Assembly: GCF_001194135.2 (NCBI RefSeq)
Contig: NC_069002.1
Span: 8,019,267 to 8,078,679 of the forward strand
Source of the DNA: Octopus bimaculoides
Lineage: Eukaryota
Length of the DNA stretch: 59,413 nt
Reading direction: 5' to 3'
Shown: piece after piece, positions 12,051 through 12,185 of the stretch
Layout: each line of letters begins with the position of its first letter
Numbering within the stretch: the first letter of the stretch is position 1
Translations under genes and position numbers: made by a program
Notes under the pieces: generated by a model
What the model was told of the DNA's origin: nothing
Database searches by the model: none
The model's input: only the letters and a program-made list of their open reading frames with translations

Positions 12051-12185
12051 CTGTCTCGGTTCTGTTGCAGGTATATTACTTCTTTTACCACCAATAGGGC
12101 AGCTTGTCCAGAAACAACCCTTTACAAGGGGTAAAAGTACCACAACGATTAAAATCGCAAATACACTACTTTTTATACTCGACAT
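12051..12185 (-). CDS. OP: Octopressin (oxytocin/vasopressin-family) precursor, first coding exon: signal peptide, nonapeptide and linker; neurophysin exons not in visible sequence
   Basis: ATG at 12185 gives MSSIKSSVFAILIVVVLLPLVKG-CFWTSCPIG-GKR-SNIPATEPRQ (45 codons). Hydrophobic signal peptide, Cys1-Cys6 nonapeptide (12090-12116) matching octopressin, amidation/dibasic site GKR (12081-12089), then donor GTAAGT at 12050-12045. The track ORF 12009-12221 starts at an upstream TTG and reads through the donor. Confidence 0.96.

Follow-up and report, generated by a model that had tools for sequence, protein, structure and literature searches.

Several lines of evidence from genomic loci, mRNA and precursor proteins suggest, with a probability that we put at roughly 85%, that octopressin and cephalotocin, the two nonapeptide hormones of the oxytocin/vasopressin (OT/VP) type in octopuses, are encoded by alternative first exons of one large gene, both joined to a shared neurophysin exon. 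The point of departure is a stretch of 59,413 nucleotides of Octopus bimaculoides DNA (contig NC_069002.1, positions 8,019,267 to 8,078,679; hereafter the window), which carries the octopressin first exon on its minus strand. A sequence-only reading of the window had proposed that the two hormones derive from separate modules of promoter plus first exon, spliced onto a single shared set of neurophysin exons. The modular first exon is supported by the single exon 2 per locus, the identity of the precursors, the annotated isoforms X1-X4 and the separate transcript start of octopressin. The proposal of one shared exon set has to be narrowed to exon 2, the sole strictly common part: the last exon comes in two alternative forms, denoted here e3a and e3b, which bring the number of possible precursors to four.

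The coding part of octopressin exon 1 occupies window positions 12051-12185 on the minus strand, and its translation (12185 to 12051) reads MSSIKSSVFAILIVVVLLPLVKG-CFWTSCPIG-GKR-SNIPATEPRQ. Accordingly, the exon starts with an ATG and a signal peptide of 23 residues, directly followed by a nonapeptide of the pattern C-x4-C-P-x-G, the amidation and dibasic cleavage signal GKR (residues 33-35 of the exon product) and a linker of 10 residues that ends in phase 0. The amidated nonapeptide, CFWTSCPIG-NH2, is the octopressin of Octopus vulgaris (PMC7181382). The reading frame runs into the intron 1 donor GTAAGT at 12045-12050 on the same strand (context CAG/GTAAGT), and read-through beyond the donor meets a stop 14 codons later in the window and 7 codons later in O. 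vulgaris. The sequence CAGGTAAGT occurs twice on both strands of the window, against 0.34 occurrences expected, and one of the two lies exactly at the end of the octopressin frame. Both the translation and the donor context thus bear out the original description of an exon that holds only signal peptide, nonapeptide and linker and stops at a perfect donor. The 45 encoded residues show 100% identity to residues 1-45 of the octopressin precursor of O. vulgaris (CAI9739012.1 and BAC82435.1) and of the O. bimaculoides isoforms X3 and X4, and the 135 coding nucleotides differ from those of O. vulgaris at three synonymous and no non-synonymous positions.

The complete exon is longer than the interval 12051-12185 first assigned to it, which stands for the coding part; the whole exon extends from about 12563 to 12051 and includes a 5' untranslated region (UTR) of 378 nucleotides (12186-12563, minus strand) that is collinear with mRNA and has no upstream intron. 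The relevant transcript is an octopus mRNA contig from a public sequencing run (Logan, SRR16213284; L002), which encodes octopressin exon 1 followed by exon 2 and e3a. Its positions 1-476 align without interruption to window 12563-12051 (89% identity), after which it departs from the window genome exactly at the donor and goes on with TGTATGTCT of exon 2. The 5' end of the contig maps to about window position 12563, and a TATAAAA box at 12586-12592 (minus strand) lies 23-29 bp upstream of this end, with a TATA-like sequence kept at the corresponding place in O. vulgaris. Thus, the octopressin exon is a true first exon with its own transcript start and TATA box, the latter being, to judge by its sequence, a candidate core promoter of the octopressin module. 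Another candidate promoter, TATAAATA at 12283-12276, was rejected because it falls within the 5'UTR of the mRNA contig.

The remainder of the gene is laid out in the orthologous locus of O. vulgaris chromosome OX597835.1 (115,109 bp, no N; L001), which contains, all on one strand, one nonapeptide exon, one exon with the CxxCGP motif and the two terminal exons. The coding part of octopressin exon 1 lies at L001 10001-10135, exon 2, the sole CxxCGP exon, at 68044-68245 (202 nucleotides, 67 aa), e3a at 81467-81570 and the more distal e3b at about 105008-105109. The mRNA contig maps to L001 at 9654-10135, 68044-68245 and 81467-81726; hence the junction of octopressin exon 1 with exon 2 is observed directly in mRNA, across an intron of 58 kb. 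The terminal exons follow exon 2 at distances of 13-37 kb, with e3b, which is exon 3 of the cephalotocin cDNA, 37 kb downstream. All junctions are canonical with matching phases: the intron 1 donor is AGACAG/GTAAGTAG (AGACAG/GTAAGT; phase 0, the same junction as in the window), the exon 2 acceptor is ttactag/TGTATGTCT (TGTATG), the exon 2 donor is GATGAAT/GTAAGT (phase 1), and the terminal acceptors are tcctag/CTGCCTGC (CTGCC) for e3a and ttgcag/CCTCCTGT (CCTCC) for e3b. AATAAA signals are found downstream of both terminal exons. The protein CAI9739012.1 is encoded at this locus, with an annotated coding range of 95.1 kb.

The same arrangement recurs in Octopus sinensis, where 59 kb of CM016880.1 (L003) contain one exon 2, then e3a (about 24221) and then e3b (about 49216); in O. 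vulgaris and O. sinensis alike, both terminal exons keep the frame, two cysteines and good acceptors. On these chromosome-level assemblies, the count of neurophysin exons, on which the shared-exon proposal turns, agrees with it: within the locus, exon 2 is present once in 115 kb of O. vulgaris and once in 59 kb of O. sinensis, and it does not occur in the 59-kb window. Two complete exon sets, one per hormone, were not found; the locus that carries both types of exon 3 has a single exon 2. Neither the window nor the O. vulgaris locus contains an uninterrupted precursor frame. Collapse of two tandem genes during assembly was considered and rejected, as the order of octopressin exon 1, exon 2, e3a and e3b, with long unique introns between them, recurs across independent assemblies.

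The precursor proteins provide the complementary evidence on cephalotocin. The published O. vulgaris precursors of octopressin (BAC82435.1/Q76DN1, 145 aa) and cephalotocin (BAC82436.1/Q76DN0, 152 aa) each have their own signal peptide, nonapeptide and linker; over the last 100 residues, from CMSCGPNGEGQC onward, which correspond to exon 2 plus e3b, their sequences are identical. The sequence-only reading had put forward such an identity past the Q/C junction of octopressin and the K/C junction of cephalotocin, and at the protein level this proves correct. When the O. vulgaris ENA model CAI9739012.1 (146 aa; octopressin exon 1, exon 2 and e3a) is compared with cephalotocin by BLASTP, the N-terminal parts differ, 67 residues are identical (CMSCGPNGEGQC...GVCCDE), and the C-terminal tails differ again, reading SSCFTTDRCDREN...YYKK for e3b and SACSSNARCN...RDKN for e3a. 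The neurophysin has 14 cysteines, 12 in exon 2 and two in either exon 3, and all three O. vulgaris precursors match the neurophysin family PF00184 with scores of 70.7-72 bits (cut-off 27.2). These proteins were reached through an exhaustive representative search with the 45 exon residues, which led to a sepiatocin-type precursor (P0002); searches with this precursor and then with a three-sequence profile returned CAI9739012.1, cephalotocin and a cephalotocin-type protein of Argonauta hians. A word-index protein search with the 45-residue peptide gave no candidate, a false negative of the kind that very short queries can yield in such searches, given that four database proteins contain the peptide exactly.

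In O. bimaculoides, RefSeq lists all four combinations of first and last exons on one 37.7-Mb contig: cephalotocin exon 1 with exon 2 and e3a (X1, XP_014771381.1, 153 aa) or e3b (X2, XP_014771389.1, 152 aa), and octopressin exon 1 with exon 2 and e3a (X3, XP_014771397.1, 146 aa) or e3b (X4, XP_014771402.1, 145 aa). The isoform X numbers of RefSeq denote products of one gene. The O. bimaculoides gene with the X1 product has a coding range of 110.6 kb, and the cephalotocin-type gene of A. hians spans 126.6 kb, such that the annotated ranges in three species come to 95-127 kb. No second gene product with the same neurophysin was found for O. bimaculoides, O. sinensis or O. vulgaris in clusters at 90% identity; the O. 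bimaculoides octopressin isoforms have no separate records, which would be in keeping with shorter products of one gene. Splicing of cephalotocin exon 1 to the same exon 2 is therefore supported by the 100-residue precursor identity, by the placement of X1-X4 in one 110.6-kb gene and by the identity of published cephalotocin primers to exon 2, which is discussed below.

Several features of the two tails were noted alongside. The e3a and e3b products both retain the final two cysteines (C-x5-C), beyond which their sequences are entirely different. The O. vulgaris and O. bimaculoides versions of the e3a tail differ at 1 of 34 residues, those of the e3b tail at 2 of 33. The e3a tail contains a glycosylation sequon (NTS) and a stretch rich in leucine that are reminiscent, as a resemblance only, of vertebrate copeptin. 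Exon 3 of decapodiform sepiatocin is closer to e3a (alignment scores 47-54) than to e3b (15-21), and exon 3 of the Argonauta cephalotocin-type protein is e3b.

As for cephalotocin, the isoforms and the gene range in RefSeq lead us to infer that its first exon belongs to the same locus, at an upstream position, and is joined to the exon 2 that octopressin uses. Given that 12 kb of the window correspond to 17.6 kb in O. vulgaris, the distance from octopressin exon 1 to the e3b stop would be about 65 kb in the window species, and subtraction of this distance from the 110.6-kb range would leave roughly 46 kb between octopressin exon 1 and a cephalotocin exon 1 upstream of it. By this rough estimate, the exon may lie at or just past the end of the window or in the gap at 53676-54531. 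The octopressin and cephalotocin mRNAs have different distributions in the brain, according to the part of PMC7181382 that deals with these peptides, as two promoters would give.

A number of observations weigh against a single gene. Cephalotocin exon 1 is absent from the sequenced part of the 47 kb upstream of the octopressin module in the window, by motif, tblastn and 5-mers (none beyond chance), and from the 10 kb of L001 that precede octopressin exon 1; neither is there a second nonapeptide of the pattern C-x4-C-P-x-G in the six frames of the window. The evidence for its physical linkage consists of RefSeq (Gnomon) models and the gene range, and automated models can produce exon combinations without full-length transcript support. 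The ENA annotation of O. vulgaris contains no cephalotocin product. Finally, Kanda et al. (2003), as cited in the section of PMC7181382 on these genes, reported a single protein-coding exon per gene.

Of the alternatives to be weighed against one gene with freely combined ends, the one that fares best, although we consider it rather unlikely, accepts cephalotocin exon 1 in the same locus and takes the four-isoform picture to be partly an artefact of annotation, the first and third exons forming fixed pairs or e3a being minor or aberrant. This would be in line with the ability of Gnomon to join alternative 5' and 3' ends in the manner just mentioned and with the occurrence of the combination of cephalotocin exon 1 and e3a as a RefSeq model only; the affinities of e3a with sepiatocin exon 3 and of e3b with the Argonauta cephalotocin-type exon 3 likewise hint at old partnerships between first and third exons. 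However, octopressin exon 1 is seen both with e3b, in the cloned cDNA BAC82435.1, and with e3a, in the Logan mRNA contig and CAI9739012.1; therefore strict pairing fails for octopressin. The preservation of frame, cysteines and acceptors in e3a and e3b of two species and the few residue differences in either tail also argue against an aberrant exon, such that an artefact is conceivable for one combination only, that of cephalotocin exon 1 with e3a.

The second alternative, which we regard as highly improbable, is that octopressin and cephalotocin are encoded by two complete paralogous genes, in the manner of vertebrate OXT and AVP, with exons 2 and 3 of cephalotocin located elsewhere and kept identical by gene conversion, and with e3b at the octopressin locus as one of two copies. 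Exon 2 of the vertebrate OXT and AVP genes is indeed homogenised by gene conversion, and the failure to find cephalotocin exon 1 in the window or in L001 would fit such a scenario. Moreover, duplication paralleling that of vertebrates is the view taken in the passages of PMC7181382 and PMC10172372 on the origin of these genes. However, the identity of the two precursors spans all 100 C-terminal residues, including a fast-evolving tail in which 2 of 33 residues differ even between O. vulgaris and O. bimaculoides; one exon 2 in 115 kb is accompanied by both types of exon 3; clusters at 90% identity hold no second gene product in the three species; and RefSeq assigns all four products, as isoforms, to a single gene. 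The last alternative, that the functional genes are intronless as published and the window exon is an extra, interrupted or partial copy with a fortuitous GTAAGT, can draw on the 2003 report and on possible intronless retrocopies elsewhere in the genome, and is scarcely credible in view of an mRNA contig spliced exactly at the window donor to an exon 58 kb away and then to e3a, the conservation of canonical donor, acceptors and phases in O. vulgaris, O. sinensis and the window species, the equal 202-nucleotide exon 2 with equal boundaries in a decapodiform contig (see below), the coincidence of the intron positions with those of the vertebrate genes, the two introns of Aplysia conopressin (positions in the protein unchecked), the ranges of 95-127 kb annotated in three species and the exclusively synonymous differences in the exon. 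Carry-over of cDNA or retrocopies might conceivably account for the single-exon result of 2003.

Under the preferred reading of a single gene with alternative first exons, the following mechanism can be proposed. The window would contain the proximal module, promoter plus first exon, of a single OT/VP-type gene of about 95-130 kb in octopods. Exon 1 starts about 25 bp past the TATA box and supplies its own signal peptide, octopressin, GKR and linker; it is spliced in phase 0, over an intron of 58 kb in O. vulgaris, to the 202-nucleotide exon 2, the 12-cysteine core of neurophysin. Exon 2 is in turn spliced in phase 1 to e3a or e3b, each of which adds the last two cysteines and a different tail and has its own AATAAA signals. 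A more distal first exon, predicted from gene models and protein identity, would encode the signal peptide of cephalotocin, CYFRNCPIG, GKR and a linker and join the same exon 2. The choice of promoter would then set the hormone made in each neuron, with a neurophysin carrier common to both hormones, and the neurophysin tail would depend, independently, on which 3' exon and poly(A) site are used. The cDNAs published for octopressin and cephalotocin would represent the two products that combine a first exon with exon 2 and e3b.

The arrangement could extend beyond octopuses. In a decapodiform (Sepia-like) genomic contig (Logan, ERR12370321; L004), exon 2 at positions 165-366 has the same 202 nucleotides in length and the same boundaries as in Octopus, with the acceptor tttcag/TGTATGGC and the phase-1 donor GATACAT/gtaagc; therefore the three-exon plan is general in coleoids. 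The sepiatocin and pro-sepiatocin precursors of Sepia may also share an identical neurophysin, in which case the shared-exon design would be common to all coleoids and date back about 300 million years. The squid 'oegopressin' transcripts given in Table S4 of PMC10172372 are Trinity DN13_c0_g1 and DN13_c0_g2, from one Trinity read cluster. A common cluster, as expected with common exons, hints at a shared-exon arrangement in oegopsid squid as well. We lean, with considerable reservation, toward the view that the two-hormone OT/VP system of coleoids arose by exon duplication within a gene rather than by gene duplication, giving a 2 x 2 modular locus of two first exons with their promoters, one core and two terminal exons. 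If this were true across coleoids, the report of single-exon genes, many expression data on octopressin versus cephalotocin that were obtained with probes, primers or 3' tags, and the phylogenies that treat them as paralogues would need to be read anew.

Positions 1-12044 of the window (minus strand) make up the first 12 kb of intron 1 and contain no coding exon, the neurophysin exons lying beyond the window start: there is no CxxCGP motif in the six frames of the window, and tblastn with bovine neurophysins and then with octopus precursors detected no neurophysin match, the octopressin exon being the sole match. The window is collinear with O. vulgaris over L001 29 to 27756 at 75-87% identity, its positions 25-12051 corresponding to L001 27756-10136. 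The possibility that neurophysin exons are hidden in the gaps at 8286-8805 and 10063-10541 was rejected because the O. vulgaris counterparts of these gaps amount to about 50 and 215 bp and are free of exons. The 47 kb upstream of the octopressin module (12593-59413, minus strand) would form an intron of the longer cephalotocin transcription unit.

In composition, the window is AT-rich, with many microsatellites and 19 N runs totalling 8,412 bases, and has the look of draft cephalopod sequence. The two gaps just mentioned and those at 15267-16000 and 18316-19181 are flanked by AT/TA microsatellites, and the O. vulgaris sequence that bridges the four measures about 50 bp, 215 bp, 3.1 kb and 120 bp, respectively; because these stretches differ so greatly in length, the lengths of N runs are not reliable distances. 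Upstream of the octopressin module, an open reading frame of 191 aa (47775-48350, minus strand) shows a weak match to the GIY-YIG nuclease family PF01541 (18.7 bits, under the cut-off of 22.6) and is probably left over from a mobile element. A repeat some 350-400 bp long is interspersed in at least six copies in the window (11295-11691, 17321-17673, 33204-33516, 39929-40368, 41245-41510 and 49558-49904) and in more than 15 copies in the O. vulgaris locus. Furthermore, a unit of 219 bp is repeated in tandem 2.1 times at 57888-58333, with related copies scattered through L001.

As for the published description of these genes, the relevant passages of the open literature (PMC7181382; PMC10172372) derive octopus octopressin and cephalotocin from duplication and assign one protein-coding exon to each. 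We found no mention of shared exons or alternative first exons for the two hormones in the open literature, subscription papers being outside the search. The architecture is already implicit in the automated gene models of RefSeq and ENA, yet, as far as this search extends, undescribed in open papers. The description as duplicated single-exon genes is contradicted by spliced mRNA and by three assemblies.

The shared exon also bears on assays in use. In the part of their study that concerns the gastric ganglion, Baldascino et al. (PMC5736919) detected 'cephalotocin' where earlier work had found octopressin only, and could not reconcile the two results. Both of their 'cephalotocin' quantitative PCR primers are exact matches to exon 2 of the octopressin locus (L001 68044-68063 and 68167-68186); therefore the assay measures transcripts of both hormones, which explains the discrepancy that the authors left unreconciled. 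More generally, no probe, primer pair or 3'-end tag that falls within exon 2, e3b or the 3'UTR can separate the two hormones, and single-cell atlases of the octopus brain built on 3' tags would be expected to merge them.

Octopus is the standard invertebrate case of 'two OT/VP genes, as in vertebrates', and reviews also call these genes intronless. One gene with two hormone-encoding first exons and one carrier would change how the convergence with vertebrates is read, and the intronless anomaly disappears because the ancestral intron positions are kept. The locus also offers a compact case for the study of promoter and terminal-exon choice in identified neurons.

With the vertebrate OXT and AVP genes and gastropod conopressin, the octopus gene shares membership in one family, defined by signal peptide, nonapeptide, GKR and a neurophysin of PF00184. 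The vertebrate genes are divided into three exons in the same way: intron 1, in phase 0, comes just ahead of the first cysteine of the core, and intron 2 follows the CC-D/N motif; their exon 1 ends in ...LELRQ/C, at the same position and in the same phase as octopressin exon 1, and the core encoded by exon 2 is likewise the part common to the two hormones. Two introns, of which the first measures about 40 kb, also interrupt the Aplysia conopressin gene. The difference is that vertebrates have two complete genes, whereas the octopus has apparently one physical exon 2 with alternative first exons and two alternative last exons. The published octopus model (Kanda et al., 2003; reviews to 2020) concerns the same two peptides and the same precursors (BAC82435.1 and BAC82436.1), but assumes two duplicated single-exon genes, in contrast to the genomes, which show one neurophysin-core exon and introns that measure 58 kb and 13-37 kb. 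CALCA (calcitonin/CGRP) and the FMRFamide gene of Lymnaea are similar in that one neuropeptide gene yields different peptides in different cells through alternative exons, and the relationship of e3a, an internal exon with its own poly(A) signals, to the distal e3b is formally like that of calcitonin exon 4 to the CGRP exons. In those genes, however, a common 5' exon and signal peptide precede alternating downstream peptide exons, whereas in the octopus the peptide lies in the alternative first exon and the carrier is common. UGT1A and the clustered protocadherins also resemble the proposed arrangement: each of several first exons has a promoter of its own, encodes the part that confers specificity and is spliced to common exons, and the choice of promoter decides the product. 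The octopus gene would differ from them in having just two first exons, in encoding a secreted prohormone with the whole bioactive peptide in exon 1, and in a 3' end that is also alternative.
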